Part shown: piece after piece, positions 2,934 to 38,962 of the stretch
How positions within the stretch are numbered: the stretch's first letter is position 1
Layout: each line of letters opens with the position of its first letter
Source: Takakia lepidozioides
Lineage: Eukaryota > Plantae > Bryophyta
Length of the DNA stretch: 64,000 bases
Direction: 5' to 3'
Assembly (NCBI GenBank): GCA_030704615.1
Contig: CM060733.1
Span: 30,566,001-30,630,000, forward strand
The notes under the pieces: generated by a model
What the model was told of the DNA's origin: nothing
The model's database searches: none
What the model saw: the letters and a program-made list of their open reading frames with translations, nothing else
Position numbers and translations under genes: made by a program

Positions 2934-5900
2934 TCACTTTGCTCGAAGGGAGCGTGTTGCATCCTCCAAGGCATCTTTCTTGTCACTTATGATATCCAGC
3001 AATTCCTCTTCACTTTCAATCTGTTGAGTGTTGCTCTTGATTTGGTCAAGAGCACTGTTCAGCGTCATGAGCCACTCATCCATATTGGCCTGTACACATC
3101 AAACCAGGTATTGACTACTAGCCACTTGATTTCCATCATACAACAATGATCTGGATGTGAAGTACACTGGACCATGCATCAAAGAAGAATCCACAGGGGT
3201 GTATACCCTTTCTCTCTAGAATCTACACAAGGACTCTGACCTGATGTTCTGGGACAGGGAAGCAGGAGGCCAGGAACAATGGAGGACACTTGTCATCACG
3301 CAACAAATTGCCATGGAAAATATTTGGCAGTTGCTGATTGACCAAAAATAGTTTCCTGGATGTACTGATGCAACGTCTACAATGCACTGGGGAAGCTATG
3401 TGAACCAAATTCTAGTATGATTAATCGGGGAATTACTTATGCATAAGTCCAAACATCTCTGGTTTGACTTCATTTGTATCGAGTCCTGTACCTGCAGGGG
3501 GCAAGCCTCAGAAATGAAGGCTTCGACATAACCCTTGTCATTGAGCGCCATTCGTGTGAAGGCTGCACGTGCCTCTCGCTGGTAGCGCTCTATAGGAGAT
3601 AAAGGCTCAAGCAGCCTTTGCCTGACATAATGCAGATGACGCTGCAATTGCCGAACAATAAATCCTGCGATGGTTACACCCTCCTCCAAACTTATGCGAT
3701 CTGACAATATGATCGATGGAGATATTTCTTCTGGTACATCCATAGCTTGGCTTCCTGCTTCTACAGGTTGAACGTAAGTGTCAGCAACAACTTAGAAAGA
3801 AAGGTCATCATCATGTATCATATCATAGTCTTTACTTTCACCCCCAATTTGTTGCTGGTTGGTGTGGGGGCTAGCTTATGGCAGACACTGATTTATCTCC
3901 AGGTTATTCATGCACTCATTTTGTTACGATCACAAGTCAGTTATCAGAAGTGATCATATTGCTACCCTTAATACATCATGACAATATGCTACAATGTCAC
4001 TTTACCCTGTCCTAAGTATTAGTGAGGTTCATTACCTGCAGTTCTCTCAGTCAACCTTGTTGGCCAGAGTTCCTCGGAGGTTACTCCTGTGTCGGTAGAA
4101 AGCTGGAGTAAATTTTCATCGTCACCATCCAGATGATTCTCAATGTCGTTTGTGTTCTCAAGGTTGCCCTCCTCCCTCTCATGACCTGTCTTGTCTCCTG
4201 ATCCGTCCTGCTCACACTGTCCATTGCCAAGCTCAGCAGTATCCAGGTTGAATCTGGACAAACCATTGTCTTCCTTGATCTCCACTGTTGCAATGAGTAA
4301 GTTGTTGCATGTCGCAAATTTCCAGATATGGTCGGGTACTCGTCCAGTGCTCTTTAACAGTATCAAGGGGTCTCCAATCACAACCATGGCTCCAGCAAGT
4401 GTAGACACAAATTGCCCAATTTTCATTAGCGATGCTTTCCTGTAATTGAAGGGCTTTTGCATCTCCTTCAGGAAAGTAATAGGAAGCCCAGTAAGGACGG
4501 GGGATTTTTCCTCAAAGATCATGGTGAAGTTTCTGATTATTTTCGCCTGAATGGTTCCATCCCTGATATTGATGCATATAGTCATCAGAAGAACCAGCAA
4601 GCGAAGGACAGCCATAGGCAGAAATGTGGCATGGTCAAGTTTTGCATGCTGCAGCCAGGTCTCAAATTGGGTGACATGAAAAAGAAGGTCAAGTATCACA
4701 TCAACAATACATTTCAAGGTATCTGCAGAAGTTAGACAAACCCAAGTTTATCAGAATGGTGTTTCAAGCTATGTCAAGTCTACCACTGGTACCTGAGTAT
4801 CCCACTTGCCATGAGCAGACTCACAGTGCATCTGCGATGATAAAAAACCAGTGTCGGAACAAACACTTTTAGCTAGATCTCACATAGATGTGAGACTCAT
4901 TTCATGATGGGACCACAACTGACATTTTGCATCAGGTCAGGGATGAAGACAGAAACACTAGCAAGAGAGAAAAGAAGTTGGAGGGTTATGAATGTGGTCC
5001 AGCAATGCCACCCCACTAAAGCACAGTTCAGAGAAAGACAGTACCTGTAAGTTTACCACAGTCTCTCGTGCATCTGGAATTGAGTAACATGGTATAGTAG
5101 GGCTCTTGGTGTCTGCCACCCATATGAATCAGAGCCAGATTCTTTGGCAGAACGATGCTCCTCAGATGTGAGGAGCATGTGCATGTTCTCACTACCACTC
5201 TCTCCAACAAGGCCAGGAAAACGAAAGGAGTTATGTACCCCTGTGCCCACCACTGGAGATCGTAGAAGACTGACTTCAATGAGATAGTGAATTTGTGCGC
5301 ATTCCAACTCCAGAAAGAACATCGACATATGTCCCGTGACACTGCTGTGGAGAGGGTAATGCTGTGCTCCCCACAAGAAATGCTCCAAAGCTTGAGCATG
5401 CATTGGTTTGGCATCTTCTGTAGTGCCCGACCGACAGCCTGGGAACACCTCCCTGAAACCCACTCCTTGCTTAGAAAGGGGTTCAAAGTAATCAGTTTAC
5501 CGATTTCATCGTATGTCATATTCTTGACTGCTGGATCCCCAGCCCCTTTGGTTTTAGTCTGACTAAAATGAACAGCAAGTGACTCCAAGACAGCCAATGA
5601 TTTCGCATCCTCTCGTGCAATCAAAACATTTTGCATGCTTTCCAGTTGGTTGGGGATCGCCAGTGTCATATACAGATGCATCAAACACAGTTGTTGTCTT
5701 TGGCATAGCAGTACTTGTGCTTCTTTTTCCCACGTCCTGCTATCCAGCAATGCTTGTACAACTCTGTATGAATCCACCATAAGCTTCAAACGTGCACCCG
5801 TTGTAGGCTGGAAATGTCTATCAAGAGTTGAAAATGCAGTCAATTTGTTGTCTGAATTCAAATCTTCCTCAGCCCCTGCGAATACCTCCGAAACTTTCAA

Positions 5901-8900
5901 CCCAGTGTGCAGTAACTGTCCAACCCAAAACTTCACAGCCAATGATGCAAATGTCATGGTGCCTATTTGACCCCGCTTATTTTCCTTGGGAAGAGGCATT
6001 ACACTGGTATTCTCCAACCAAGCAAAATTCATATCTTCCACTATTAAAGATTGTGGTTGAGAGTGCTTTGCCACCCCTAGATGCAGGAAGACAAATTCCA
6101 ACAAATTTTCATCATCAGCTGTATCCCGCCCCTTCAGGAGTCTCTCAAGGGCCTGTATCAAAGATACCAAAAACTGGCACCAATGTTCCCACACTTCATG
6201 TAGTTGAAGATCCTCTGCCTTCTCATAGGCAGCATGTGTGATATTACACCCATTCTTGGGTGCCTGTACAAATTTTATCTGCGGCGGCTCTGTAGAAGGA
6301 GCTGTATACAGAGACTTAAACATGGCTAGGGCTGCATCTATGACAAGGTGGCATGAAATCACTTCAAGCCTAACCTTTTTCTGGGCCTTAGATCTTCCCC
6401 AGTTCTCCTTGTATAGCTCAAATGTTCCAGAGTTTACCGATTGCAAAACCTTGATTTCATCTAGTAATGCAGTGTCAACGCCATTCCCTTCATTTTCTGC
6501 CAGATCTCTAGCTTTCTCCAGCAGCTGGGTTGTCTCATTGGTAGGCCTGAGAGGCCAACCGTTGTTGCCATTCCCCCACAGCATCTCCAACCACACAACC
6601 TGAAGCATTTTCACAACTGCCTGCCCAAAACACCCAGCCTGTTGCAGCAATGCAGCTGAAAGGTTCATATCCCCCTTTGCCTCTGCCAATTCAGCAGCTT
6701 TTGTGAAGTTCCCCGCGGCCTCCTCTATCTCGAGAAGTTGGTCGAAGTAATCTCTCCTGAGGAGAAATGACCTTCTTGAAACCAAACTAGGGAACAACAA
6801 CACAAATCTCATCATCCCTTCCACGTTCTTCTGCTGATGATGATAATGTGCACATTTCTTGAGGAAGTCAGTCTTCACTGAGTCGAACTCCTCCCACCCC
6901 TTTGCTTCACAGATTGTCTTTCTGCATCCTCTGTGGGCTGACAGTCCATCCGCAGCTTTGGATGGCCCTGTAAACTCTTGAATACCTTTAATTGCTGTGC
7001 CTTTAATGGTTGTCTGACTGTTTCGCTCCAGCTCCCACTCATAGATAAAAGACAATCCAATAACCAGAAGTTTGCCTCGCCAGCAAGCATTTAGACATTT
7101 GTTGGGGCATATGTGGAAGTAGGCATTGGCTGCCTCCCCCCAGCATTTTGCCTCACTGAAGCAGTGTCCGGCATCTTCCAGTCTAGGAGGAGTACATATG
7201 TCTCGATAAACTTGTCCTGTCAGTCAAAACATAAAAACTTTAGTGAACATGGTCAGAATATGATGTCTAGGGCTTCAGACAAACAAGAACATATTTGTAC
7301 CAGACTTTGTGGCGGCTGAGGGCCTTACATCCTGCTCAATTAACAGACATCCTGCGTTGTAATAAGGAATCCCAAGGATGACTTGCATGAAATTGAAACA
7401 ACTTCAGGGTGGAAGTGCATCTGTTACAATAACTTACCAGCTTTCTTATGGTCTCCCAATTTGCTGTAGCATTTTGCTGCACTTTCCCCTTTACAGAGAG
7501 AGACATATCTCTCGGCAGCATCCCGTAGAAGGCGGCCTGCTTCATGGGGGTTTATGCCTTGCAGCCTCTCTGCGGCCTGCTGAAGGCTTGCAGCTTTTGC
7601 CCATTGAGCCCTGGATGTATCCCCTGCTCGCTCAAAGCATAATTCTGCTGCGTCATAGTGATGCTCATTGAACATCTGTGCCATGCACACACTAAATATG
7701 TTATGTACTATCCTCACGGAGGTATGATCACAAGAAAACAGTTCTGGCTGACTGGCCACACTTAGTCAATGCTCTGGGGTGCATCCAGACCTAGAAAGCC
7801 TCGAAGACCAAGTCTATAATCCAGCCTGCAGGACCTCAGGGGCTTGATTCAAGTACCTTGATTCCTGGCCTTATCCAGTCCTCCACGGTACTCTTTCCCT
7901 GCAATTCTTCAGCAAGGGATGCATCCAACCGCTTCACCTGCACCAGGCCTGCAGCCTTCCAGTAGTCTAGCATGGGGCGATGATGCTCAATGCTCTCGTC
8001 ATAGATCCAAAGCCTCTGCCGTGCCCTTGTCAACACGACGTAGAGTTGTTTCAACTCCGAGCACAAGAGATTGTGCCGATTTGGATCAAAATGTGGGAAA
8101 TTCACCTGGCTCTTCTCCTGTTCTGATAGGGGGATGTGCTCAACCATGAAAGAATAAACCACTCTCCATTTATTTTCCAATGGAGAATCAGCAAAAAAGT
8201 TGTATAGTAGGACATCCTGCAGCCATGCTCCACAGTTGGGTGAGCCTATCCCCTCTTTGCTGAAGTTGCACTGGATTTCTAACAGTTCCAATAGCTAGCA
8301 TTCATTGTGACTATACTTTGTCAGGCACGTTCGGACCCCACTTACCACTGTCATGCAGAAAACAGATAGAGGTCTTGTTTAAAATTTTCATACCTGAAAC
8401 TCCAGCCCTTTGCATTCATGGACACTGAGGACAAGACCTCTCCGACCAAGCCGATCAACCATCCGACGCTTGGTCTCAGTATCACGGACCAGGATAACCT
8501 GCTCTGCTCCAAATTCACAGCCACCTCCCCCAGCCGCCCCTCCTCTATCGAAGAGGGTGGCAACCAAGTCATTTTCTTCTGTTTCCAGAAACACAGGGGT
8601 TTCCCCATGAAGCAAGCTGCTTTCAGGATCCAGTTTATCTACAGAGTTTGGGAAAAAGTGGTGCAGTAACTGAACCGTGCTGTCTGCAATTCTGACAATC
8701 CCCATATGTGTCCTGAAGTTCATGCTCAAATGGTGGAGGTCTGGCACCTTGGAGGCTCTTCGACTATATTTGCGGCACTGTTGCCCTCTCAGCCCTCCAA
8801 CAGCCCTACCTGTATTGTTGCCAATCTCATTGTGTTCTGTTGTTGGAGAGATAGAGGGACACAAGTGGGGAAGTTCAATTTCCGTCTCTTCCCTTCCGAG

Positions 8901-11900
8901 AAACTCTGTATAAAACAATCGCCGGATATCTTGAAACCGAAACCCAACACCTCTGGCAATTGTTTGTGCAGTATCACCAGCAAACACAAAGCCCTCCTCC
9001 AGATTGTCGCAGACAAATTTATAGAGTGCAATCTGGGCCTGCGTGAAATCTTGCACCTCATCAACATATACAAAGTGCAACTTTTGGCCTAAATACCCTC
9101 CATTCCGCAACTGCCAAGAGAGGTGAGATACAAAATCAGCCATATCATAATCCCTAGTTTCTCTTTTTTTCTTCTCATACTGCAGGAACACCGAGTAAAT
9201 GTCCTCTCGCTGCTGTTCATCAAAAATTGAGACCCGCCTTTCAGACATAGCAAGGTAGTCCTTCTTGCTTAGTTGGCCTGTTGGGTTCCGAAGGGCCTCC
9301 AGGCTGCCCTTGATGTAGGACATTATTTCAGTATATACGAGAGAGGCATCCAGCTTTTTGGTCACTCTGGTGTTGAGATGCGGCCAATAGAAAGACACAA
9401 ATCTCTCGTAGTCCACTTCTGTTCGTCTCAGCCGCTGGTCTTTTCTCTGCAGCCCTCCCCTGGTGGTGTCAAGGCCACCCTCCAAGGTGATCTCACAGAC
9501 ATCCTCCTCCTCACTGGAGTATCCATTATCTTCCAGAGGATCTATGTGGTCATCTTGGTCTTCCTCAATGCATTCCCCATCAGTCAAATTTGCTTCAATA
9601 TCTGCAGCAGAAGATTCTTCTTCCAGACTAACAATCTTATTATCTGCACATGGACTGGAAGACAAGAAAGGGTTTTCAATGCTGCCATCGAGCATAGTCA
9701 AAAACTTTCGGAAAGTTATGACTAAAGGATATGCATCATTGGGAACATTGGAAAAGCTATTTGGGATCGATCCCATGAGCTTGGCTTCTTGCTCCTCATC
9801 CAGCATCATTTCTTCATAGACCTCATCACTCCCCGGATCTATCCCTCCATCGGCTTCCCGCATTGACCTGCAGGAGATAGCATCATGGCAAAGCACAACA
9901 TGATCAGATTTAGTAAGAACTGCCTTGAGGCATAGTCCATCAAAACACACAGATGACACACCCAACAAAATGAATGGTACGTTATACCGTCTGTGGGAAG
10001 CTCAAAGAGCTCATGGAACAAAAAGGGGGCTTGCAAATCCAGAGTCTTCAGTCTCCAAGAACATGATCTTACAGGTGCTTGCTTTTATATTGCATGACTC
10101 TGGCGATCCCAGCAGAAAAGCATCAACAGTTTAGGCAAGCCAACTATCTTGTGAACTTTCTGTGGAGAGGAGCAAGAGGGGTCCAAGTGCGAGCACCTCG
10201 TACCTACGGGTCTTGCCAATATGGTGCTTGACGGCTGCACACAGCTTGGGGCTGAGTGTAACGAGAGCTTGTCTCAGGACTGCTGTGTCTTTAGAAATTT
10301 TCAGACGTCCACAAGCATCGTTTTCAGCTTGCTGGCATACAGACAACATACCGTTTGTTGCAATCCAAAATTCCTGTTCTCGCCGTAGTAGCTTTGTGCT
10401 GATAACAGTTGTTTTTCCAGTTCCAGATCTACCGATGATGAATGAGCTCATCGGATACTGAATAATTGCCACCTCTTGTTCATTGACCTCAAAGGGTAAC
10501 TCCACCTTTGAGCCATCTGAGGCTGTCAGCAACTGCCGGGCTATGCCAGAGGAGAGGGAATAGAACTTCATCAACAGAACACTCTCATCCACTAGTCCAT
10601 TAGGTGAGCCCCGTGGAGCTCCTCTCTCTCTAGGTTCGCGTCGCTCCAAAGCCTTGTACCAGGTGAAGTAGGGGTCCCACTCCCATTTAGTGGGAATAAC
10701 CAATTTTCGAGTCCTGCTCCACAACATCACCCATGTTCAAAACATGCCCGGTTTCCTAAGGAGGAAAACAAATGAAGTGAAAAATAAAATGAAATGATAC
10801 TTTTTAACATCTGCTGAAAGATCAAAGAGCTTGACAAGAAAGCATGAAACAAGAGAAATAAATGGGACTTTATAATGTCCACAGAAAGCTCAGGGAGCTT
10901 ATGGGGTAAAAAGAAACAAGAAACAAGAAAGAGAACAATAGACAAAGAGTGAAGCCAGAAGCAGAGCCCAAAAGCAACTACTGCTCAAGCTTCGTGCAGA
11001 TGGCATTTCTGATCCTCATAATGGAAGACTTCTTTTAGAGACTGTGTTATCTCCCACACATCTCATAGTAAAGAGGGTAGTAAAAGAAGTGTACAATGGT
11101 TGGGCCCCGTGCAGGCTGGGCACAGGCGGTCTTCTCACTGCAGGTTTTCCCACCTACCAGTCTCTATCCGTAAATTGTGGGAGCCCACCCTGAACCGCCC
11201 CAATGCCTCAGAAGAGAGGGAGATAAAGGTGCACATAGGTAACTAGACCGCAAGATTCTATCATCATGGAGAAATGAAATGAAATGAAATGGTGCTTTAT
11301 AACGTCCGCGGAAAGCTCGTAGAGCTTATGGGACAAAATGGAAGAAAACATGAGAGAGGAACAAATCCAGAAACCACAATTAATGTTCTAACGATTGTCT
11401 AAGGGTGAAGGCCTCGTGTAGGTAGGCTGCCACGCATTTTTGATCCTCATAGTGAAAAACATCAGTGAGAGTTTGGGTTCCACTGAATAAACAGTGAAAT
11501 CTCCACCGGATCTCGTAGTATAGAGGGCAGTAGAAGAAGAAGTGTTCTTCAGTTTCAATTTCCTTGCTGCGCCCTATGCAAGCTGGACATAGGCGGTCCT
11601 CCCGTTGCAGGTTTTCCCATCTGCCAGTCTCTATCCGTAGGTTGTGGGAACCCACCCTGAACCGCCCCAATGCCCTCAAGAGGGAAGGAGATAAGGGTGC
11701 TGAAAGGTAATTTGGTCTCAAGATTCTATCATCGCGGAGCACCAAGAATGTCTCTCGATAGAAGTGGAGCTTTGTCGTGAGATTGGGTAGCATCCAAGTT
11801 CTCTTGACATGTAATTCCATAAGCTCTCTCCGAATGAGTCTGTTGCGGTCATGTCTGGATGTGATGTCCACCTCATCTGGGTTCATTGGTAATAGGAAAG

Positions 11901-14900
11901 CAGTAGAAAGTCCGTTACGTTGAAATAAACTGTCCACTCGAGCATACCAGGAGTTCCTGAAACCTGCAGCTTTGAGCCTCATAGATGTTGTGAGGGCCCT
12001 TGCCACTAGCCCTTTGAGTGGAAGGGCCTGCAATCTATGGAGAAAGATTGTAAGCCTGAAGAGGGCCTCGGATTGCAATGGTACACATGCGAACTCTGCA
12101 CCTAGGATCTGAGATGGAGTTGTGCTCCTGGCGCCAAGCATTGCTTGGAGAAAAGATGACTGTAATGGTTCCAAATTCTTTTCCCACCAGGAGACAGGAC
12201 CAGGTGCCCAGAACTCACAACCATAGATGGTAGCAGGGCTGACGACGGTGTCAAACAGCCACTTTTTGGTCGGGGGATGCCGCAGATGTATTTGCTTGCA
12301 TTTGGCCTGAAGGCGGACGGAGGCCGCCTTACCTTTAGTCAACCTGTCCAAGGCAGTGGCTGCAAAGTGAAACTTGGGGGAGTGGATAACCAGACCTAGG
12401 TACCGGTATGATTTCACAATCTCAATTTCCTGCTGGTTGAAGATGAATCTACGATCAGCCTGGCCATTGAAGACCATGATCTTGGTCTTGCTAACATTGA
12501 CCTGCATCCCATAGTCTTTGCAGAACTGTTCCAAAATTTTGAGATGGCGTTGCAGAAAGACCGGGGATTGTGCCAAAAGGGCAACATCATCAGCATAGAG
12601 GAGATCTGATTGGGTTGGTCCCCCATCCAATGGGACCCCAACCCCATGGTCCAATGGGACCCCTCCACAAGCAGCCCAAAAACAAATAGTGTTCAAGGGG
12701 TTGTCTAAGAGTGGATGTGTCATGCAGATATGCTGATCGCTTTCGATTTCCCTGTTGTTTCCAGTTAAAGAATGAAACTCTATAACTTCCATCGGAGAAA
12801 TGATAGCAAGGGGTCGCATAATGCCTTGGTTGTGTGGTCAAGCTTTACCTGTCAATATACTTCTTTGTGCAGCGCTCGATGTAAGTCTGGGTGTATGTCA
12901 GATACCCAGCTTCGAGTCGCCTCACAAGCCCAGCAAGATGAGATATATCGACTGCATCCCACACCTTGATCACTTGGACAACTGTCGGCCCCTTTTCAAC
13001 ATCAACCGTCCATACCAACAGAAGCCCTGCTACTGGTTGAACCTGTATCAGCTTGGCAAAAGCTTCAGTGGCAAGGTCTGTGGATGTGGGATATGGTGAT
13101 CGCTTACCCTTGGCCAAATTGAGCATTGTGTTCAGAAGGAGCTGACGACCTTGAGTGGACCTCATTTGTGTTATTGTTACCTTCATCTCCTTAGCAAACA
13201 GTACCTGTGGGAGAAAATGAAGTTCAAACTATTGATGCAAGCTCCAGCAATGGGGTCTTCACACAGAAATCATCTGGTGTGTAACCAATTGAGAGTTCAT
13301 AAATGAACAGCAGAGGTGAATCCAAACTATAGCTGAGCAACGGTAAGTCATCTCAGACGACAGCACTAAGCTACAGTCATCTTTACTCACCTTCCACAAT
13401 GGGGTCTTCACACAGAAATCATCTGGTGTGTAACCAATTGAGAGTTTATAAATGAACAGCAGAGGTGAATCCAAACTATAGCTGAGCAACGGTAAGTCAT
13501 CTCAGACGACAGCACTAAGCTACAGTCATCTTTACTCACCTTCCACAAAGTCCCATTGAAAAGTATTGACTTTGGGTCAAGCAACTCTGCAAGCTGATTG
13601 AGCTCTTGCTTCACCCTCCTAATGACTTTTGTCATGCCCTCATCAAGTCCTGCAGAGACAAAGCACTTTCTCTGCCTCACATTCTCCAGCAACCTCTTCC
13701 AGACTGGGTCTTTCAATCCCAACGTGCTTGAATTGCCCACAATCCACATGCAATATCTGGAACAAACAACACAATGTTCTTATAAGCTTACAACTTTATT
13801 AACTTTTCAATTACAGAATGTTATATCCTCAGAACCATGGCAAGGTATAATTCTTCCCGGCTGATTGACAATCTGTACGGGATTGCTATGTGAGATTGAA
13901 CTTTCTAACTGGTCACACCAACCACGTGAGTCTGGTCACCACACTATGATTGCTATTCTACAAACCTTGGGGGTATTCTTAGTCTAGGACTCAGTAGCTG
14001 CATCTATTTGAATTGAAATGGAACTTTGAAGAAAGTTACACTGATACAAAAATCAGAAAGCCGCGAGCATTCGGAGTCCAGTTTGGCAAGATAATCAGAG
14101 TGTCTTAGTTTTGGAAGACAAACTGGACGTTACCTAGCCCGTGTGATGGCAACATTGAGTCTCCGGTAGTCACTGAGAAACCCAATGATGCCTGATTTAT
14201 TTGCACGAACAGCTGAAAAGATGATGACATCTTTCTCTCTCCCCTGGAAACCATCAACTGACTTCACTTCAACATCCACACTGCCAGTGTGACCCTTGGT
14301 CTGTTGGACATTATCCAGGCGTCTGTTGAGGGCTTCTACCTGGCTTTTATATGGAGAAATAATTCCAATTGTCAATCCTGTAATCTCCCATTCTGCACAC
14401 ACTGGAAGCATTCACCTGTAGTTGAGGAGAAGATACTACCAGGACAGCAGACAAGTTGCAAATGCTGTACTAGAATCAAGAGTTCGACATGGTCGCATTA
14501 CTGAAACAACCTGTCTTTTTTGTGCCTGGTAAACTCCGGACTCCCGTTTGAGAGGTACCCCCACCCAAGATGAAATAAGAGCCAAATCCAAGGTAGGAGA
14601 GCTTTCAAAGATGAAAACTTCCAGGACAGACCAGGTCAAAACTTCCACGAAAGACACATGGAAGAAGAAACAACAACAATCGGAAGGAAACCAGAAGAGT
14701 GCTGCCTCAACCTTATTTCAGTCTAATGCAATAATCTCACTTACACTCCACAAAAAGATCCAAACAACTTCCACTTGTGTTGTCTAGAAAATGATCAATG
14801 TAACCTCACTAACATCTTCACAATGATGAGCAACATACTGGGTAGAGTTTCAGGAAAATATGAGCAGAACTACAGCTGCCGTATATACCTGCACGTAACC

Positions 14901-17900
14901 TTCCAATCAAATGGAGCACAACCTCAACCTCCACTAGGTTCCTCCAAGATCTGCTCCCACTATTTTCGTCTCTATCCTCACTTCCATCACGGACATCAAT
15001 AAATGCATAGGGACCAAAAAGCTTCTGCTGATAGGGCAGGTTGGAATATGTCTCTTGCAAGACATTTTCCCCATCACTGACTTCTGCATTATAGAAGTGA
15101 AAATTTGGGAAAATACTAATAGCTGGATGCATCCTATACTGCACATTTAGAAGACTGCATGGATGCTTCAATGTCTGAAGCCTCTCAAATAAGCTTCGTC
15201 CATAGCCGCAATCCTTGGCAATCTGAAGTAAGAACAACCCACACAAGATGTCAGAGATCATCTCAGAGTCCCAATTCGATCGCCACAAAGTAGATTGAAA
15301 TCACAGTCGAAGGTAAAAAGGAAGACACAGAAAAGAATTGAGGAGAACAGAAGTGAAGAACTGCCAACCTTAAAAAGGACCGGTGGCACAAGTAGACCGC
15401 ATGTGTGATGATATGGTTACTCAACCACTAGTACAATTGACAACCTGAACTTTCAAGAACAAAATTCTATTCATGCAGAGAAATCTGCATTGAAAATTTT
15501 TGGAGTGGAAGGGGAACACATTCAGGCAGGCTACCTGACTTAAGACTGTAGCTGGCAGTTGCATGTGGTCTCCTACTAAGATGGCCTGTTTCAATCCAGT
15601 CATCCGAGTGACAATGGCCATCTCAGCCTCTACACATTGAGAAGCCTCATCGACAATCAAACACTCAAAAGGTGGACTTGTGCACACAGATCTGCTTCCC
15701 GCTGAAGTGACAGTGCAGAATACAAGGGAGGCATTTTCCAGACAAAGCTCCTGCAGCAGCTCCTCCACAGGTCGAGGTAAAAAGATGGACCCAGGCTCCG
15801 TTAGTGAGGTCAACATCTGGCAAAGAGACTGTCTTGCATTCTGAAAACGGAATCCAGAGCTTCCCTCGTTACATTGCCCTGCCAGCAGTAAGGGCTCACT
15901 CCAACTGGCAAACAGATCAAACCAAAGCTGGACCTCTGCATCCGTCAAGGTGGCATCACTCACAAGCCTCAAGAGCTCTGTTATCTGATTCCCTGCGGCT
16001 TCCAGTTTCTGAATCGTGTCCCTACTAATATATTTACTAGGCAAGTCCGTGCACAGAATGTGACCCTTTTCCTTCATACTTGGTGCCAATATTTCCAATT
16101 TTGACCTGACAAACTGCAAGAAGCTTGACATGGGGGTTGTGGCCACCTTGTTCGTCTGATAATTTTCTTGATAGGCTTCATACTGACTGCCTGCCAAGTT
16201 CAGAAAATCCAGCACCGCATTTGTGGTTGCCCGCCAACCATTGATCGAGTCAAGAGCAATCATTAGCCGCTTGACTCTATGGGTGAGATATATTTGTCCT
16301 AACAGGCCCTCCACATCCAGCCTGTCCTCATTACCAACCAAAACAAGATCACCCAACTGCAAAGGACAAGTGCTGCACTCACATTGAAATCTGTGCAATT
16401 GACAGAATTCAGCAAATTGGAGGTCTCTGCAAGTGAAGAAGTTCAAGAACCTTCTAGCAACCTCAGAGATTGCAGTGTTTGTTGGTGCACAAACAAGAGT
16501 TCGGCAGTTCAGAGAGCTCAAAATTGAGAGCAGGGTAGCAAGGGTTGAAGTCTTCCCCGTGCCTGGGGGTCCCTGGATTAATCTCACCAGAGGTTTCTCT
16601 CTCCTTAGAAGCCCAAGAATTGTAGTCCTTATGGCAAGTGCTTGTGAATCATTCAGCCTCTGGAAATCACAGTAGCTGCAGATGCCTTGTTCAATTTCGA
16701 AGTCATGATCCACCACTGAGCAATCTCTGTCTGTTACTTCTGTCCCCTGGAAAAAAGTAAAGAGTTTTACTTTGAATTCTGATTTGTTGTACATCAGCAG
16801 TGTTGCATCTAACCCTCCAAAGAAATTCCTATATGTTCAGAGGTGCCTCCTTCACTGCTGTTTTCCTTTACTCCTCAGCAATACAGTGACAAAGACAAAT
16901 TAAAAGCTACTATTTATGTCCATGTCCCTCATGAGCTGCGTGGGCATGCTAATGGTACTTTGGAGGTATGAACTATAGAGATGGAAGAATGCAACCCATA
17001 CCTCTGCCCCTCTATAAAGTGTCTCCTCAATAATGGGTAGCTTGACCTTTTCAGACGGGTGCAGTGCATCCCATATCCGCAGCCCTGTTGCAAGGTTTCC
17101 CAGACACACAGCAAACCAACTCTTCTTTTCATCCAACATAGATGCATACTCCGGACTTTCTGATGGGGCATACACTTTGGCCCGCAAAATTTTTGAATCT
17201 TCAGAGTCTTCACGACTCAACCCTGCTAGTGATGCAAGAGCATAGTGAACTCCCGGTCTCTGAAGTTCACTGTAATCATTGTCCGGCACATATGTGGTCA
17301 GGACAATGAGGTCAGTTGGTTTTGGTTTCCAAGTAGGCTTCCCGTTTTTGCCTTTGCTTATTGGGAGTTGGTCATTTTGTGTCAACATAAGAGTTTTCAG
17401 GTGGCTAGTTTTGTCCAACTGACGTTTTTCATCAATAGAAGTAAGGACTATATATGGTGCAACGCTGATCTCCTCAAAGGCCTGTTGGAGCTGCGCTCGA
17501 GTTTCCTCCACCAATGGCCAAGCAAATACTTCCATGTACTTCTTCAAGGTGGCAAACTGAAGGGGTATGGCCTCCACCTGCTTAGGCAAGAAGATGGTGC
17601 ACCTGATTAATCTTCACTGCAAAAGGAAGGACTCTTTAGAGTGCCCACATCACTTTTGTCCCCAATCATATCTCTGTTGGTGTATTCACCAAAAATCCAG
17701 GAAATCAATCCCTAACCGCCCCCTCCACAACATAATTCTACAGAAGAAATCATCCTTGCCCACAAATCATAGCATACCAAGCTATCATATTTACAGCTTG
17801 TTCTTCCTTGATCGGTGGCATAACCATGTATCTCTTCTAATTTGCTAGTTTGCTAGTCTACTTGTTACTTGTGACAAGTTCCAGGTAGGTGGTGCTTTTG

Positions 17901-19130
17901 ATAAGCAGTGGTCCAACTCAAAGTTTCCCAAGACCATTGTGAAGAGAGTTCTCAATACATCCGTAGCATACTGGTTAGTTCATTTAATTTAATCTGATCT
18001 GCACACCCATCGAAGGAAACAACCAATCTGCGAGTGGTACTTCCAATTGGGTAGGTATGCAGTCAGACTTCTCACACACTTTAACATAATGTCAGGTCCT
18101 GAGAGGAAAACGGCACTGACTGGGCTTCCAGCACAAATAGCTGTGGTTCTCATGAGTTACCAGGGTGAGGTTTTATACTAAATTACATAGCAAGCCATAA
18201 GTGATAATCATGCACTTGTCACTACAGAGATGACCTCCCTTCCATGTTAAGAAAGCACCAAGTGCAGGCAGAAAAGTCTCATCCTTGGGGCAAGGTAAGA
18301 GCAAGAGACTAACAACTGTGGTCGTTGAAATAACACGAACTAACCAGTAGGGTGCTTCAAGCAATGTCAGACTTCTGGAGTAGTACCCTGCCGTCTTTTG
18401 AACTTCAAAGTGCTACTACTTTGAGGCACTAGAGTAAAGCTCAAGTGCTAGGAGATGTTGGGGGGAACTTCGCAGGGCCACTGCAGTAGTAGGTCGGTGT
18501 AAGTACTGGCCTAAATGCTGGTATCACCTTTCCAGTTGATTTCCAATATTCACCAAAGTAGTACATACAGAGGGTTGGGTAGATTTTCACCTTGTTCACT
18601 AGAAGTCTCTCTTTCATGATGTCCTCGATTGACCACCTGAGCACCTCTTCTAATAGAGAGTGGTTTTCCTTATATTCCTTCGCATCAGCAGCACTCATTA
18701 TCCGTACAGCCTCCCCATTTCCTTGTACAGAAAGCTTCTGGAAGAATTCTTTGTCAGGCTCTTGAATGAGCACAGGGATTAACTGAGCCAATTCTTTGAA
18801 AACCCATAACCTTCGGTTATCCAGACTGTACCAGCCACCTTTGTGATTGACAACTCGGATGGGGGGAATATCAGTGACCTTCAATTTTCCCTCCTTGAGC
18901 TGCTTAAGTGTATCATTCAAAGACACAATTGGAGAGGCCTGCAAGGCCTCTGCATAGGATGTTCCTGTGGCAGCCTGGCCGGCACCAACATTTCCGGCCC
19001 CTTTCTGTACTGGTTTTAGGAGGGTCCTCCGGAAGACTTTGCTGATTGAGGCCTGAGTGTATTTGATGTCTTTGGGATCCATCAAGACCCTGGAATCCAA
19101 TTCCACGGCTGAGGTTTCTTGATCGGCCAT
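2934..19130 (-). CDS. TRANK1-like double SF1 helicase (SEN1/Upf1-type + UvrD-type + TPR) with N-terminal ParB/Srx-like domain, ~3,120 aa, apparently intact
   Basis: Exons read by eye, all GT-AG and phase-compatible: 19130-18591, 17577-17002, 16746-15535, 15222-14889, 14401-14134, 13756-13540, 13204-12849, 10713-10204, 9867-8394, 8216-7857, 7675-7438, 7216-5045, 4722-4036, 3760-3492, 3089-2934. The last exon ends either at TGA 2936-2934 or at a donor AA|GTGAGT leading to a further exon. Helicase 1 motifs: [55 protein letters not shown]. Helicase 2 motifs: [44 protein letters not shown]. Confidence 0.88.
7857..10713 (-). other. UvrD/REP-like SF1A helicase module, exons 8-10
   Basis: [70 protein letters not shown]. 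Confidence 0.92.
10855..11270 (-). mobile_element. Older, degenerate 3' fragment of a LINE in intron 7
   Basis: Homologous to 11290-11735 (e.g. ccagtctctatccgta...cccaccctgaaccgccccaatgcc, caagattctatcatc, gaaagctc...gagcttatggg), but with indels. Confidence 0.8.
11271..12650 (-). mobile_element. 5'-truncated LINE (RT C-half + C-terminal CCHC) in intron 7
   Basis: [44 protein letters not shown]...[13 protein letters not shown]; stop at 11380; (CATTT)n tail at 11271-11290; short duplicated filler (tccaatgggacccc x2) at the 5' junction. Confidence 0.9.
13248..13548. repeat. 149-bp tandem duplication spanning the exon 6 donor site
   Basis: caatggggtcttc starts at 13248 and 13397; the copies differ at one visible base (gttcata vs gtttata); both contain TGGAAG|GTGAGT on the minus strand. 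Confidence 0.95.
13540..17577 (-). other. DUF6469 + SEN1/Upf1-like (AAA_11/AAA_12) helicase module, exons 2-6
   Basis: WSIEDI...KVEAIP..F.....Y...[11 protein letters not shown] (DUF6469-like, beginning in exon 1), followed by the full SF1B motif set. Confidence 0.9.
18765..19082 (-). other. ParB/sulfiredoxin-like domain in exon 1 of the helicase gene
   Basis: [15 protein letters not shown]...[12 protein letters not shown]....[24 protein letters not shown] matches the I.[FY][ST]Q.SI / P.I.VV / DNRRL pattern of ParB-like domains; SLDNRRL at 18827-18807. Confidence 0.7.
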
Positions 19131-26544: not shown

Positions 26545-27566
26545 TGTTAGAGGACTGTAGGGGACTTAGAAACTTATACGGGATCTGTAGGGTACCCTTA
26601 ATTTTTGCACAGACTGAGACCAACAGGAGCCTTAGGGGTGACAGCAGCGCACTGTAGAGGGGGGTTACATAGCCCACACAGCCGACACAGCAGTCACAGG
26701 CCACACAGCCAACACAGCCCGTCACAGTCGTTACAGCCCACACAGCCCACACAGCCCACACAGCCCGTCACAGTCGTCACAGTCGTCACAGCAGTCACAG
26801 CCCACACAGCCGACACAGCCGACACAGCCCGTCACAGTCGTCACAGCAGACACAGCCCACACAGCCCACACAGCCAGTCACAGCCCGGCACAGCCACACA
26901 GCCAGTCACAGCCAGTCACCGCTTGACACAGCTGTCACGATAATAGGGAACGAAGAGTAGGACAGGGAACGACTGTGGGGAACAACACCTGTGAAGGGAA
27001 CATGTTAGTTCACATACGACGGTTAGAGAGGGAAACGGTTAGAACCGCGGATAGGAGGATAAAGGGAGAAACGGGGAATGAAGGATGATCATTATTCGGA
27101 GGGGGACTTCGGAGTCAGGCAGGAGCGGAGATCGGAGGCAAGAGATGGAGAGCACGATGAAGGAGGAAAGAGGATTAGTAGATGCTTGTTATATGCAAAG
27201 CGGTAGTGATATTGTAGAGCAGATTAGAGACATAATGGCTTCGGCCTGATACCTGATAAATCATAATCTGATACTTATACGATACAATCACACTGTGTAG
27301 AGAGATCTGAGAGAAGCTGTGGATTGAATGGATGAGTGAAGGAAACCGATAGATTGATGAAGCAACTGATACTTAATTATCAATGCCAAAGGTAGCTAAG
27401 ATGAATGCGAAAAGGGAAACGCATAGGAAACACCCCCATGATACACTAGCTGTAGGTCATGACTGATTGTTCTGCGCGGGCTGAGTACTTAGAGATTTCC
27501 AACTCTTCTATCTTGGAGTTTCCGCCTCGGATAGCGAAGGGATGGGTGAGTAAAAGCTGCGCGACA
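26545..27566 (+). repeat. 5' LTR (1,022 bp, TG...CA)
   Basis: Begins tgttagag, ends gctgcgcgaca immediately before the PBS; contains a CACAGCC/GTCACAG array at ~26668-26938. Confidence 0.93.
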
Positions 27567-28154
27567 TTTGGCGACCATACTGGGGACCTGGGACATGAAC
27601 AACCAGATGTGACAGGCATCTGGTGGGATCATGGTGGTTGGACCATTAAAGAATTTGAAGTGAATCAAATTCCATGTGGAACGAAGGAAGAAAGATTGTC
27701 CAAACAATTCTTTCAAAGGTTCTTGGAATTGCCAGACGGATGTAAAGAAAATATTCTTAAACGAGTGCATGATGCTGATCCAGAATGGGGTCTGGAGAAA
27801 GGAGTGATAAAGATTTATCAGGTAGCCTGTAGAGGAAGAGCACGTTGGTTACCAACATTAGTTTATGTGATAGCGTTGCTATCCATTAAACGAGTAGAGT
27901 TTGAAGGCTGGGAAGAAAGAAAGGTGAATGTTTATACTCATATGCATGAAGAGCTTGTACTGGTAAAGAATTGGATTCCAAAGGATATTTTGTGGATCAA
28001 ACTCATACCAAGAACAGCTTTTCAGACTTGTTTGCCATATGGTTATATGGTAACGGAGACTTCAAGTATAGCCAAGGGTGCATTGAAGCTTGAAAGAAAC
28101 CCAGGCATATACGAGAGATATTACAGAAGAGAGTTTTGGTTATTGCCACATTAA
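27459..28154 (+). CDS. Extra ORF upstream of gag, unknown function (231 aa)
   Basis: Uninterrupted ORF starting in U5 and crossing the PBS, ending 21 nt before the gag ATG at 28176; no recognisable motif. Confidence 0.4.
   Translation: MTDCSARAEYLEISNSSILEFPPRIAKGWVSKSCATFGDHTGDLGHEQPDVTGIWWDHGGWTIKEFEVNQIPCGTKEERLSKQFFQRFLELPDGCKENILKRVHDADPEWGLEKGVIKIYQVACRGRARWLPTLVYVIALLSIKRVEFEGWEERKVNVYTHMHEELVLVKNWIPKDILWIKLIPRTAFQTCLPYGYMVTETSSIAKGALKLERNPGIYERYYRREFWLLPH
27569..27587 (+). promoter_or_regulatory. Primer-binding site, tRNA-Arg-like
   Basis: TGGCGACCATACTGGGGAC lies 2 nt after the LTR; TGG is complementary to CCA, and TGGCGAC...CTGGGGA resembles the complement of plant tRNA-Arg 3' ends. 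Confidence 0.75.
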
Positions 28155-28175
28155 AAGAAATGAAAGACATGGGAC

Positions 28176-31100
28176 ATGAGTGATGAAAGAGAAGCTAGAC
28201 GACAAAGATATTCATCAAAAAGAGAAAGCTATCTGAAAGCTAATTATCCATATCTTTGGGAGAGAGGAATAGACATAGGGGAATCATCTGGACCTCTCAC
28301 ACCATCAAGATCAAAAAGTGCATCACCTATACCGGAAGAACTAGAGTTGGATGCCACTCCTTCTGTTTCTTTGCAAGAAAGATTAAGGGAATTGGTACAG
28401 GAAGAAGATCAATCACGAGGTGAAAGATCTGAAGTACATCCTTGGATAAAAGACTTGACATAAATCTTTGATAAGAGTTGGCATGGAACACCAAAAGCAG
28501 GAACTCCAGTTTCTGAAGCAGAAGATGAAGAAGGAGAAGAGGATGTGGCAGAGCCAACGGAGAGTTCAGACTCTCCAACACCATTACAGTTGAGTTACAT
28601 GAGTGAAGAAGAAACCCAGGGCAGAACTTGGAGGATGAAAACAGAGAGAAGAAATTGGAAGAGGAAGAATATGAAGAAGTAGACCCAACCGCTGAGGTTG
28701 AGACTACAACCAGGACATCCCAACCCGTTGGACCTGGATCAAGTGGAGCACTTGGATCACAGGCCAACGAAGGTGTCGGCTCAGGGGATCAGGCGGGCTG
28801 CCTGGATCTGGCTCTGGGGGGACAGGGAGTGTGGGAAGTAGTGCAACTGAAGCTGGGAATACTGTGAATATCGTGGGACCAGAAGCAAGGAGTGCTCAAG
28901 GGCCACCACTTGGTGGAAGATCCACCACAAAAACAACAGGTCCAGAAGGACCAGCACCAGCAAGGGTGCCAGCACCTGCCAGTGGGCAGAAGGTAGGGCC
29001 ACAGATGGCGTTACAACCAACACGGGCAAAACCACCCTTTCCAATATATTCAGGAAAAGGGGATCCCGATGTACACATTAGCCAATTTGAGCACATGTGT
29101 ATAGTGAACAATGAGAATGGCGATGATGCCAAGATGAGACTGTTTCCTTGTTCACTTATCAAAAAGCAAGTGAATGGTATGCAAGATTCCCTGATAATCA
29201 TTTCCTAACCTGGAATGGCTTGAATACAGCATTTCGAAATAGGTTCAGGACAAGTAAAACTGAGGATGAAGTATATGGAAGTTTACAACAGCTGAAGCAG
29301 AAGAAGCATGAAACTGTTGAAGAGTATATGGAGAAGATGGAATTGATGATGAAAAAGCTGGCTGCAGTACCAGCGCCCGGTTTACAGAAGACTTGGTTTG
29401 TGAGTGGATTAAGACCAGAGTTGCAAAAGAAAGTGGATATGTTACCCCATAATACAGTGGAAGAGGCATTTGAAACTGCGAACAGAATTGAGCAATTGGG
29501 AATGCTCAGGAGAGAGAAAAAAGAAGATGAGGACTCTGAGGATGAGTCAGATGAAGAAGAAGAGCAAGAACTAAAAAGAAAGAGTAAGAGAAAGGAGAAG
29601 TTGAAGAGGGATAACTATGAAAAAAAATTGGAAGAAATCTTGAAGAAGTATGCCACAGAGGCTGCAACACATTGGAGGAAGGGTGTATGGTGTGCAAAAT
29701 GCCAGAATGAAGGCCATACCACCACAGAATGCCACATGAAGGAGAAACACTGTACTATCTGTAAAATGGATAACCATTCTACTGAGAATTGTTACTACAA
29801 CAGAAGGACAGCTGCAAGAGAACCTAGGCAAGTAAGGGTGCATCAGGTGCAGCCCCAGCCAAGAAGAAATAATGATCAGGACCACTATGGTAGGTCTGGT
29901 GGTTATAACAATGGCATGGAAGGGAGAGGTAATTCAAGAGGGAATTACCAAGGGAATTCCAGAGGCAACTATCAGGGTAACCCAAGGGGGAATTACCAGC
30001 CCGGGAATCAGGATTATAGAAATAATCCAAGAACAGACCAAGGGCGAGGACCCAATGGTGAAGAGCTATGTTACTATTGTAATCAGCCAGGACATCGCAA
30101 GGCAGCCTGTTCATTCTGGATAAGACACCAGAATGAGATGAGAGCTCCTGTGAATGAGGGCCCAGTGGTGGCAGCTCACATGGTTAGGCCATGTGTTGTA
30201 CCAGAAGTAAGTACAATGATAGTAACAAGAAGTAAAGCCAAACTAATACCTCCAGTAGAAGAGGAAGAAGATGAGAATGGAAGTGGCAATGATATGCCTG
30301 AAGATGAAGAGACTTGGAAAGATGAGAGGGAACTGCACAAGGAAGTGGCAGATACTATAAGGGAAATGCAAAAGAGTACTGATATTCCTGTGGCAGATTC
30401 CTCTGATTCGGATGGAGAAAAAGAAGGGAGTGAGGAAGAAAGGAAAAAAAAAGATGCAGACATGCAAAGTAATGAAGAGACTTTGGCTGCAGTAATATGT
30501 CAGACCAAAGCAGAAATTACCATTGGACAGCTATTAGCTGTGGCACCTTATTGTAGGCACAGGCTGTATCAGGCAATCAATCGAATTGCCCAAGAAACAG
30601 GAAACACAGACCTGAACAGCAAGGTGACCAATTATAATGTGAAGCCGGAAGGGCGAGAACCAGTCATGGACTTTGATGATTCTATGCCAGTAATCCAATT
30701 GAGAATTGGAAGCACAGAACTAACTGATGTACTGATAGATGGTGGTTCTGGAGTAAATATCATGACAGACCAATTAAGGAAGAAGCTTGGTCTAAGTAAC
30801 ATGAAACCAGCCCCATTTACAGTAACAATGGCAGATCAAAGAAGTGTACAGCCATTGGGATTAATAAGAGGAGTTAAGATACAGATACAGAAAATGATCT
30901 TTATGATCACAGTAACTGTATTAAAAATGGATGAAGTCATGGAGGCTTACTCCTTATTATTGGGACGTCCATGGCTGAAACAGGCCAGGGTATTCCATGA
31001 CTGGAATTCTCAGTTACTAACTGTGCATAATGGGATGCACGAGATACAAATTACCACAAAGAAATCTAGTAGATTACCTGCTACAAGAAGACCTCGAGGA

Positions 31101-34100
31101 GTCAGAGAGTATGACTGGAGAGGAGGACTGGATGAGGAGCAGGAAGCTACCCTATTTGCTGCACACCCAGAATGGGAGCAGGTTGCGGAGATGCGGCTGG
31201 AAAGCCTAAGTTGTTTAAGAGGTATCTGCTGTGGTGTAGTGTCGGCAACACCAATTGAAGAGGAAACCAACTGTTACCCACCACATTTCTATGAAGAAAA
31301 GGAGGGAGAGATAGAAATCCTAGAAGAACCAGCCACTGTGAGCTTAAAGGATGAAGTGGTGACTGGTTGGACAATCACAGCTGATGAGCAGGTGAGAGAA
31401 GTAAATGTGGGAACTCAGGAGGAACCGAGAATGGTGAAAGTAGGAGCTGAATTGGAGCCGGAATTCTTCGAAGAAGCTAAAAGCTTGTTCATCAAATACA
31501 AAGATGTATTTGCTTGGAGCTATGAGGATCTAAAAGGGATACCACCTGAAGTCTGTCAGCATAAGATTGAACTGGAACCAGGGTCAGTACCAATCAAACA
31601 GGCGAGGTATAGAATGAATCCCAACTACGCACAGAAATGTATTTGCTTGGAGCTATGAGGATCTAAAAGGGATACCACCTGAAGTCTGTCAGCATAAGAT
31701 TGAACTGGAACCAGGGTCAGTACCAATCAAACAGGCGAGGTATAGAATGAATCCCAACTACGCACAGAAGGTTGGAGAAGAGATAAAGAAGTTGGCTGAG
31801 GCTAAGTTTATATACCCAATAGAGTATACAACTTGGTTGTCACCCATTGTTATAGTTCCAAAGAAGAATGGCAAGCTAAGAGTATGTGTGAACTATAAGA
31901 AGCTGAATGCTTGTACGAAGAAAGATCCTTTCCCTTTGCCATTCACAGAAGCAGTATTAGACACTGTGGCAGGCCATGAGATGTACTCATTCATGGATGG
32001 CTTCAGTGGTTATAATCAAGTGCAAGTGGCAGAAGAAGACCAAGGGAAAACAGCTTTCATCACAGACTGGGGGGCTTATGCATACAAAGTCATGCCCTTT
32101 GGACTTTGTAATGCACCAGCGACCTTTCAGAGAGTGATAAGTGAATCTTTTCATGAGTATCTGGATGATTTCATGCAGGTGTTTTTGGATGATTTCAGTG
32201 TGTACAGCTCTAAGAAGGAGCACTTGCATAAATTGGAGTTATGCCTGGCCAGATGCAGGATGAGAGGTCTGGGCTTGAATCCAGAGAAGTGTACTTTCTG
32301 TGTGAACTCAGGGGTGCTTCTGGGACACATTGTGTGTAAGAAGGGACTTCTTGTGGATCCCAGGAAGACAGAGTCCATTAAAATCTCTCCACCACCAGTG
32401 AATGTTAAGAGTTTAAGGAGATTCCTTGGGCAAACCAGTTATTACAGAAGATTTGTCAAAAGGTATGCACAAATAGCAGCACCATTGAGCAAGCTTCTGA
32501 AGAAAGATGCAGTGTTTGCCTGGACAGCTGAATGTCAACAGGCGTTTGAGGAACTTACACTGTCAGTAACAACTACACCTGTGCTGATTAACCCTCACTG
32601 GCATGTAGTATTTCATGTTCACTGCGATGCATCAGGAGAAGCGTTGGGTGCGGTGTTAGCCCAGAATGTTACAGGAAATATAGATTCACCTGTGTACTAT
32701 GCTAGCCGATTGATGAACAGTGCTGAGAGGAACTATAGTACAACGGAAAGAGAAGCATTGGCAATGATTTATGCAGTCAAGAAATTCAGGCATTACCTAT
32801 TGGGAAGAAAGTTTATGTTTTATGTGGATCACCAGGCTCTGATATATCTGGTGAACAAACCTTTGATAAGTGGAAGGATAGCGAGGTGGTTAATAATCTT
32901 GCATGAGTTTGAGTTCGAGGTTATTTACAAGCCTGGCCGTTTGCATCTTGTGGCAGATCATTTGTCACGACTAACAACATGAGAGGCCGCCACAGGAGTG
33001 GACGATCAGTTACCTGATGCGAGTTTATTTGTAATGGAGGTGCAAGGAAGTGCAGATGAATGGTTAGATTGGCAGTGGCCAATCAGATACTACCTTGCTC
33101 ATGGTCAGTGCCCACCTAGTTATGGTAAGGAGCAGAGGAAGAGAATTGCTATCAGAGCTTTACCTTATACTATGGTAGGAAGCAGAATGTATAAGTTAGG
33201 ACCTGATGGAGTACTAAAACGATGCTTGTACCACCATGAAGTAAATAAAGTCTTGGAGGAAGTTCATAAAGGAGTGGCTGGAGGTCATTTTGGAGAAGAG
33301 ACTACCAGTAGAAAGATACTACTCGCAGGATACTGGTGGCCTACTTTGTTCAAAGATGTACATGAGTATTGTCAGAAGTGTGATGAATGTCAGAGGCTAG
33401 GACCTTTGCAGAGATCTGGAAGAATGGCCTTGTATCCTACAATGCCTACGGAACCATTTCAGAAATGGGGACTAGACTTTGTTGGACCAATTAATTCACC
33501 ATCCAAGAATACACGAAACAGGTACATAATTACAGCCACTGATTATACTACAAAGTGGGTGGAAGCTAAAGCTTTGAGGGACAACACAGCCAAGTCCACA
33601 GCAAGGTTCCTGTACGAGAACATACTTACACGATTTGGATGTCCCTTAGAATTTATCAGTGATCAAGGAAGTCACTTCATGAATGAGACCATTGAGTTGT
33701 TGACTAAAGAGTTTATGATTGTGCATAGAAAGAGTACAACATATTACCCACAGGGTAATGGGCAGGCAGAGGCTACCAACAAAATACTATGTACTATCTT
33801 GGCTAAGATAGTCAATGCAAACAGAACGGATTGGGATACAAAGCTGCTGACAGCTTTGTGGTCATATAGGACTTCATATAAAGTCACAACTAAGTATACA
33901 CCATTCCAATTAGTTTATGGTATGGAAGCCTTACTTCCAGTGGAATTCCTGTTACCTACCATGAGAACGGAGTGGGGAAAAAGAATGGAATTGCAAGACT
34001 CCATCAAGGTCAGGAAACATGAATTATACCATGTGGAAGAAGTACGTGCTGATGCAGCTGATAATATGACCAGAATTCAGATGAAGCGAAAGGAACAGTT

Positions 34101-34658: not shown

Positions 34659-34687
34659 CACAGCCTGTCACAGCTCAACACAGCCTA
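34449..34687 (+). repeat. ACAGCC-based short repeats (about 30-bp units) at the integrase C-terminus
   Basis: acacagcctatcacagcccatcacgacg-like units, translated as TQPITAHHDV repeats. Confidence 0.85.
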
Positions 34688-34958
34688 CTAAAATTACACG
34701 AACCATAGAATCAGTGACAAGTGGACACATAAAAACTTCAGGAAAATGGATGACGGAAGAGGAAACGGAAATTACTTTAAAAATAGACACGTGGAGGTCA
34801 GGATGCGACACACAGCAGAGAATGAAGTGCAAGGACAGGTGTCAAAAAGAAAGAGGAAAAGAACGCCGTCAAATGGGATGAAAGGCGGGCCCATTAATGA
34901 ATACGGAAAATAGGAAAAAGAACGAACGGCAAGTACAGAAAAGCTGAATTCATGTCGC

Positions 34959-38924: not shown

Positions 38925-38945
38925 ACCGTGAGGACACGGCTTTTT

Positions 38946-38959
38946 GAGGGGGGAAGGGG
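38946..38959 (+). promoter_or_regulatory. Polypurine tract
   Basis: ttttt-GAGGGGGGAAGGGG-taa immediately before the 3' LTR. Confidence 0.9.
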
Positions 38960-38962
38960 TAA

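Follow-up and report, generated by a model that had tools for sequence, protein, structure and literature searches.

The Tox-ParBL1 family has been defined by its predicted ParB fold, an N-terminal Ser/Thr that is missing from classical ParB, and an [NT][RT][RT] motif, mostly N-R-R, that is equivalent to DGHHR (Zhang et al., 2012, PMC3482391). Its members are linked to MafB, RHS, filamentous haemagglutinin and HINT toxins, with NGK_2271 of Neisseria gonorrhoeae as the type example, and its hosts include stramenopiles, Viridiplantae, Chlorophyta, fungi, metazoa, ciliates and kinetoplastids (PMC3482391). The contact-dependent inhibition (CDI) toxin ToxB, which also has a ParB fold, binds ATP and hydrolyses it, depends on the arginine of its Box II, and has toxic effects in plant cells (bioRxiv 10.64898/2026.05.05.722872). 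Here, a Tox-ParBL1 domain is described from the bryophyte Takakia lepidozioides, in a stretch of 64,000 nucleotides (assembly GCA_030704615.1, contig CM060733.1, positions 30,566,001 to 30,630,000 of the forward strand), the whole of which is called the window. The domain is encoded by the first exon of a gene for a very large plant helicase with two superfamily 1 (SF1) motors, called gene 1 below. Judged by homology, this N-terminal fusion is genuine, and the ParBL1 domain may act as the output of a nucleic-acid surveillance factor.

Exon 1 of gene 1 lies on the minus strand (18591-19130) and contains 180 stop-free codons from an ATG at 19130 to a GT donor at 18590; residue 1 of the homologous Ceratodon purpureus protein (P0160) aligns at 19130. 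All exon-1 motifs that had been quoted in the original prediction are found when this segment is translated. The ParBL1 domain occupies residues 12-147 of the exon (18690-19097, minus strand), as supported by structure prediction, Foldseek, VIA-align and profile matches. A HMMER search of 1.84 billion representative proteins with exon 1 yielded 544 matches at E ≤ 1e-3, 31 of them at E ≤ 1e-10, well above what chance would give. Conservation is concentrated in residues 12-36 and 70-147, while residues ~37-69 represent an insert that is common to other double-helicase versions and is modelled with lower confidence (lowest ~40-59). The consensus of 150 relatives (alignment A1) reads P..I..TQ.SI...F, a short helix, DIP.IRVV, a segment of 14 residues and IPV. 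The signature D104-N105-R106-R107 (18810-18821, minus strand) is the counterpart of the ParB DGHHR or Box II phosphate-binding motif, and a coding pattern for W-Y-S-L-D-N-R-R occurs once in the window, against an expectation of 0. In A1, all four signature residues and the L behind them vary little or not at all. In a second alignment, A2, which combines helicase-linked and toxin versions, the N and the second R of the signature as well as the L behind it are invariant, and at least 90% of the sequences have the D and the first R. Thr25 aligns with the Ser of the toxin F-S-Q motif, and Ser28 is conserved as well.

Established family models do not capture the domain. Exon 1 matched no Pfam family even at E ≤ 10, NCBIfam and PADLOC gave no match for the domain, and comparison with the sequences of the PDB gave matches at chance level only, for the single sequence and for the profile alike. 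When the 150 relatives were scanned against Pfam one by one, ParB_N was the commonest family, but it was found weakly and in only six of them (best E 0.0012). Structure prediction with AlphaFold2 was unusable for the single exon-1 sequence (predicted local distance difference test, pLDDT, 34), and reached a pLDDT of 86 and a predicted template modelling score of 0.77 with alignment A1. All 50 best Foldseek matches of this model in the PDB are sulfiredoxin, ParB, Noc, KorB, SbnI, SerK or Atu1540, with modest E-values (~1e-2) and a probability near 1 for the best of them. VIA-align listed 11 chains at Z of at least 2, topped by 2hwj (8.3), the sulfiredoxin 6ky4 (7.9) and SerK 5x0b (7.2); SbnI, KorB, PadC, human sulfiredoxin and pNOB8 ParB are further best chains, and the listed matches with Z of at least 3.5 are all ParB/sulfiredoxin-type proteins. 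The ParB/sulfiredoxin fold that had been proposed for exon 1 is thus borne out by the model and by the Foldseek comparison, and the core of the domain is predicted to adopt it. The domain is neither a canonical ParB N-terminal domain nor a sulfiredoxin: PF02195 does not match it at E ≤ 10 and it is followed by a helicase lead-in instead of a helix-turn-helix (HTH), and the position of the sulfiredoxin catalytic cysteine, in a motif of the G-G-C-H-R type, reads L-D-N-R-R.

The affinity to toxins that had been anticipated for the domain was recovered by structure as well as by profile. In the ESM Atlas, the predicted structures most similar to the model come from the C-terminal parts of bacterial PT-HINT, RHS, PT-VENN and MafB proteins, together with unnamed mollusc and cnidarian proteins, with template modelling (TM) scores of 0.63-0.69 and a root-mean-square deviation of ~2 Å over ~105 residues. 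The A1 profile matches a PT-HINT protein (P0349; E 2e-10; domain at 175-257 of 285) and two DUF4157 proteins with the domain at the extreme C-terminus (P0321, E 1e-19; P0325, E 3e-18), and it also matches a metagenomic 'ParB N-terminal domain-containing protein' (P0360). The F-S-Q and S-L-D-N-R-R-L-W motifs are common to all four. Therefore, the exon-1 domain shares with Tox-ParBL1 the predicted fold, the [NT][RT][RT] motif (D104-N105-R106-R107), the N-terminal Ser/Thr and a sequence relation to toxin C-termini, and by sequence and model it is a Tox-ParBL1 domain, with the toxin relation drawn from P0349, P0321 and P0325 and from the Atlas matches. It stands outside any polymorphic toxin system because it lacks a trafficking module and an immunity gene: the domain is N-terminal, and Pfam recognised no PT-HINT, RHS, VENN or immunity family on the exons of gene 1.

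The helicase to which the domain is joined could be followed along the window by mapping homologous proteins onto the DNA, without a joined full-length protein model. The C. purpureus protein P0160 (2,920 amino acids) gives 14 collinear high-scoring segment pairs from 19130 to 3489, which cover 2,799 of its 2,920 residues (96%) with 0 stops and 45-68% identity per exon; going by these sequences, gene 1 and the Ceratodon gene differ as genes of different species or as paralogues. Proteins from Calypogeia and Selaginella map onto the window in the same manner, and the lengths of the homologues range from 2,600 to 2,920 amino acids, against ~3,120 in the original prediction for gene 1. Intron 1 (17578-18590) is bounded by the GT donor at 18590, directly after the last exon-1 codon, and by an AG acceptor before 17577; it is of phase 0, the frame resumes in phase with V-E-A-I-P, and the homologues run across the junction uninterrupted. 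The best database match (P0001, 56% identical) has an exon-1-sized open reading frame (ORF) on an independent contig, with the same end point and followed by a DUF6469/AAA_11 exon. It had been claimed that DUF6469 starts within exon 1, so that the fusion would be independent of splicing. The first part was imprecise: exon 1 alone has no Pfam match to DUF6469, and the match begins in exon 2 (at residue 81 of its ORF, which corresponds to position 32 of the profile). The second part stood, because V-L-x-W-S-x-x-D-I, a lead-in of the helicase family upstream of the Pfam DUF6469 that is conserved in alignment A2, begins within exon 1, so that domain and helicase share an exon.

All further parts of gene 1 are likewise on the minus strand. 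The homology-supported part of exon 2 (17014-17577) contains the rest of the lead-in and DUF6469, and is supported by Pfam and the mapped homologues. The first motor, a Upf1-like SF1 helicase (14133-16674), comprises an AAA_11 exon (15526-16674) with the Walker A motif GPPGTGKT and the Walker B motif DEASQ, and two AAA_12 exons recognised by Pfam (14857-15246 and 14133-14399). Two linker exons (13534-13773 and 12869-13213, together spanning 12869-13773), defined by mapped homologues, lead to the second motor, a UvrD-like SF1 helicase (7851-10706) with exons at 10203-10706 (Walker A GRSGTGKT), 8394-9869 (DEVQD, Pfam UvrD-helicase) and 7851-8231. Both motors, defined by Pfam, Walker motifs and mapped homologues, have kept intact Walker A and B motifs. 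The C-terminal region (3489-7678, with exons at 7436-7678, 5058-7211, 4232-4717 and 3489-3740) is collinear with the homologues; no Pfam family, TPR and ankyrin repeats included, was found in its stretches 5028-7055 and 7427-7765. In plants, NCBI labels this helicase family 'TPR and ankyrin repeat-containing protein 1'. The fused protein of ~2,900 amino acids thus comprises ParBL1, DUF6469, the Upf1-like and the UvrD-like motor, and a C-terminal region in which no domain was recognised. DUF6469, AAA_11/AAA_12 and the UvrD-like motor lie in one collinear gene, as in the plant TRANK1-like double SF1 helicases. The predicted fusion of the domain to a double SF1 helicase is confirmed by the collinearity with P0160 from the ATG onwards and by the two intact sets of Walker motifs. 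A reverse-transcriptase ORF fragment (RVT_1, 11380-12819) lies outside the protein, within the intron of ~2.1 kb between the linker and the second motor (10706-12869); it has the same orientation as gene 1 and is skipped by every mapped homologue.

The fusion is not restricted to Takakia. An N-terminal ParBL1 domain is found on double helicases of Calypogeia fissa, Ceratodon purpureus, Selaginella moellendorffii, Closterium and Chlamydomonas eustigma, on single Upf1-like helicases of Riccia, Calypogeia and Closterium, and also on helicases with CCCH fingers. The insert, with an S-Y-A-E/R motif, is common to the double-helicase versions from chlorophytes to lycophytes. The shared domain and insert therefore indicate, as far as sequences can, one ancient and vertically inherited fusion that arose at the base of the green lineage. 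In contrast to these versions, ParBL1 is missing from all of the ~115 angiosperm homologues that a search with the helicase region retrieved, in agreement with the expectation that they begin at the helicase, and the leader before a helicase without ParBL1 has a median length of 23 residues. The proposal of a swappable N-terminal effector was not supported in the sampled set: the 133 homologues begin with ParBL1 or else with a short leader, apart from a few longer N-terminal extensions, and the pattern seen is one of presence or absence, with no exchange for other effectors. A word-based search with the Ceratodon N-terminus, which is too insensitive for a survey of taxa, retrieved only the query itself and one Closterium protein.

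Outside the green lineage, bivalves, chytrids and Endogone commonly have ParBL1 as a stand-alone or repeated domain. In bivalve molluscs it is found in numerous short proteins (among them P0008, P0075 and P0292), singly or as two or three tandem copies and with nothing else recognisable as a domain, and a euglenid protein (P0084) combines six WW domains with a C-terminal ParBL1. On a metagenome contig of 2.58 Mb from the ENA (locus L001), one unbroken ORF of 3.3 kb (P0149) encodes ParBL1, AAA_11/AAA_12 and a CCCH finger, and neighbouring ORFs match the bacterial families Host_attach and baeRF_family12. Going by its sequence, P0149 may represent a ParBL1-helicase fusion that extends beyond plants.

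The window contains a second copy of the helicase gene on the same strand (gene 2, 22866-45826). Its exon 1 (45455-45826, minus strand) is 55% identical to exon 1 of gene 1, and an in-frame loss of residues 76-122 (47 residues) has removed the IPPIRVV strand, the DNRR motif and the next helix and strand, that is, the ParBL1 core. The UvrD-like exon is split at 40348/26546 by a Ty3/gypsy long terminal repeat (LTR) retrotransposon of 13.8 kb on the plus strand (26545-40348), which encodes gag, reverse transcriptase-RNase H and integrase. The compared LTR segments are 99-100% identical, and the element is young. Of the 2,920 residues of P0160, only 1,860 have a counterpart in gene 2, which has lost ~500 residues of the C-terminal region and is a decaying duplicate. 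In angiosperms, several helicase paralogues per genome are found on one contig. The double-helicase family is multi-copy and turning over, and is not a single-copy gene. As a detail of the retrotransposon, its 3' LTR is ~380 bases longer than the 5' LTR, between 39605 and 40011.

The reading that we favour, with a probability of roughly 55%, is that the ParBL1 domain, as the native N-terminal part of an intact double SF1 helicase, acts as a nucleoside triphosphate (NTP)-using output in nucleic-acid surveillance. The domain would still bind, and probably hydrolyse, an NTP, because Thr25 and Ser28 as well as D104-N-R-R107 have been kept. It would be the enzymatic output of the helicase, and engagement of a nucleic acid by the motors would license an NTP-consuming activity, or a phosphotransfer or nuclease activity. 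The whole protein would be a surveillance factor against viruses, transposons or aberrant RNA. A role in surveillance or defence would fit the toxin ancestry, the tandem birth-and-death pattern and the resemblance, at a generic level, between the motors and MkoA and GajB. Phosphotransfer or switching is also possible, as the structural neighbours of the model include kinases (SerK, SbnI, sulfiredoxin) and CTP-gated clamps. A predicted ParBL1 homodimer with ATP had a score of 0.00, which counts neither for nor against binding. In a more far-reaching version, which we consider unlikely, the ParBL1-helicases of green algae and early land plants would be a lineage-wide, cell-autonomous system of immunity or genome defence, in which the two motors sense nucleic acid that is foreign or aberrant and release the toxin-derived NTPase head. 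If this were true, the head would shut down the cell or the invader, in a plant counterpart of the bacterial helicase-effector defences; the system would later have been dismantled toward the flowering plants, and the intact and decaying copies in the window would be an evolving defence locus.

Several points weigh against a role in surveillance. ToxB is the closest experimental precedent, yet by our comparison it belongs to the related Tox-ParB group and not to ParBL1. No functional work on plant TRANK1-like helicases and no mention of DUF6469 were found in the literature. RNA-derived contigs that match the window are 90-99% alike and cover helicase exons only, none of them exon 1 or the junction; these fragments are probably from paralogues or relatives, and their lack for exon 1 is no evidence of silence. 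The helicase may be independent of ParBL1, since it is absent in the angiosperms and its core is gone from gene 2. That a single architecture has been kept from chlorophytes to lycophytes is as compatible with a core role in the cell as with immunity, and it has been suggested that eukaryotic ParBL1 domains were absorbed into core systems (Zhang et al., 2012, PMC3482391).

The last two points lead to the most serious competing explanation, namely a housekeeping helicase with a domesticated ParBL1 that has no role in conflict. The domain would regulate or assist a conserved RNA- or DNA-processing helicase, as an NTP-gated switch similar to the ParB clamps or as a phosphotransferase similar to sulfiredoxin, SerK or SbnI. 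The conserved lineage-specific insert and the kinases and clamps among the structural neighbours speak for it, as does the proposal of Zhang et al., and we regard it as possible but doubtful, because core machinery is not usually encoded by a multi-copy family that includes tandem duplicates and a paralogue in decay, ParBL1 is missing from all sampled angiosperm homologues, and NTP-gated dimerisation is left without support by a homodimer prediction that gave no verdict. The loss of ParBL1 from a retained helicase, in the angiosperms and in gene 2, could also mean that ParBL1 has no catalytic activity left and persists only as a structural remnant, capping the N-terminus or offering a surface for interactions. 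This is improbable in view of the signature, of which the N, the second R and the L are invariant and the D and the first R nearly so across plant helicase, bacterial toxin, and animal and fungal stand-alone versions; moreover, the core-less gene 2 is broken overall. Finally, exon 1 might be a separate small gene that annotation has wrongly placed before the helicase, and no transcript reads bear on exon 1 or the junction. Such an artefact is very improbable, as the helicase lead-in begins inside exon 1, the GT/AG sites are in phase, annotated proteins of four other plant lineages read across the junction, and the same exon structure is present on the independent contig of P0001. Two further features of the window concern its ends. 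Just downstream of the 3' end of gene 1, an endonuclease/exonuclease/phosphatase ORF (954-2435) followed by a long open frame (3-953) on the minus strand (together 3-2435) looks like a non-LTR (LINE) element. Between 56000 and 64000, the GC content rises from ~45% to 53-58%, with a strong positive GC skew.

The Tox-ParBL1 family and its presence in plants and chlorophytes have been known since 2012 (PMC3482391), and homologues of the fusion are already in public databases. The main text of that paper does not mention a fusion of ParBL1 to a helicase, and one of its supplementary files contains nothing on ParBL1; it is the only publication found that uses 'ParBL1' for this domain family. The value of the present observation is moderate, as the domain in plants was published in 2012, the proteins are public and the immune reading is conjecture. 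It ties a family of bacterial toxin warheads to a very large, uncharacterised family of plant helicases. The link is ancient and absent in the sampled flowering plants, and therefore model angiosperms cannot reveal the job of the domain, while mosses and liverworts can. As no Pfam or NCBIfam model recognises the domain, ParBL1-helicase proteins are annotated as if they lacked it. The ATPase activity of ToxB and its killing of plant cells provide a concrete biochemical hypothesis for ParBL1.

Compared with known systems, the window domain shares with the canonical CTPase clamps ParB, Noc and KorB and with sulfiredoxin the core fold and a phosphate-binding motif at a strand-to-helix turn, but it differs by the lack of an HTH, of a C-terminal dimerisation domain, of the sulfiredoxin catalytic cysteine motif and of a match at the level of Pfam. 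Animal ZNFX1 and the bacterial proteins MkoA of Mokosh and GajB of Gabija resemble gene 1 in that SF1 motors are joined to or partnered with an effector. However, this resemblance is general for SF1 helicases, gene 1 showed no recognisable GajA, PLD nuclease or NFX1 zinc fingers, and the PADLOC matches of its motors are to MkoA over the generic AAA_11 core (E 2e-19) and, weakly, to GajB (E ~1e-5). ToxB likewise has a ParB-fold domain without HTH, which it uses as a toxin, but it was found via PF02195 and has a GxxR P-motif, in contrast to the DNRR of the window domain, which PF02195 does not match. The Tox-ParBL1 toxins are closer, with the same predicted fold, N-terminal Ser/Thr and N-R-R motif, profile matches at E 2e-10 to 1e-19 and TM scores of 0.63-0.69. 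In the toxins the domain is C-terminal on secreted RHS, CdiA, MafB or HINT proteins, whereas here it is N-terminal on an intracellular eukaryotic helicase, without a pre-toxin module or an adjacent immunity gene and with an insert of ~33 residues specific to the green-lineage helicase versions. The closest counterparts are the plant TRANK1-like double helicases, also labelled 'UvrD-like helicase ATP-binding domain-containing protein', whose angiosperm members are without ParBL1, and of which M758_8G126400 of Ceratodon purpureus and SELMODRAFT_438696 of Selaginella are collinear with gene 1 over the whole length, from ParBL1 to the C-terminal region.

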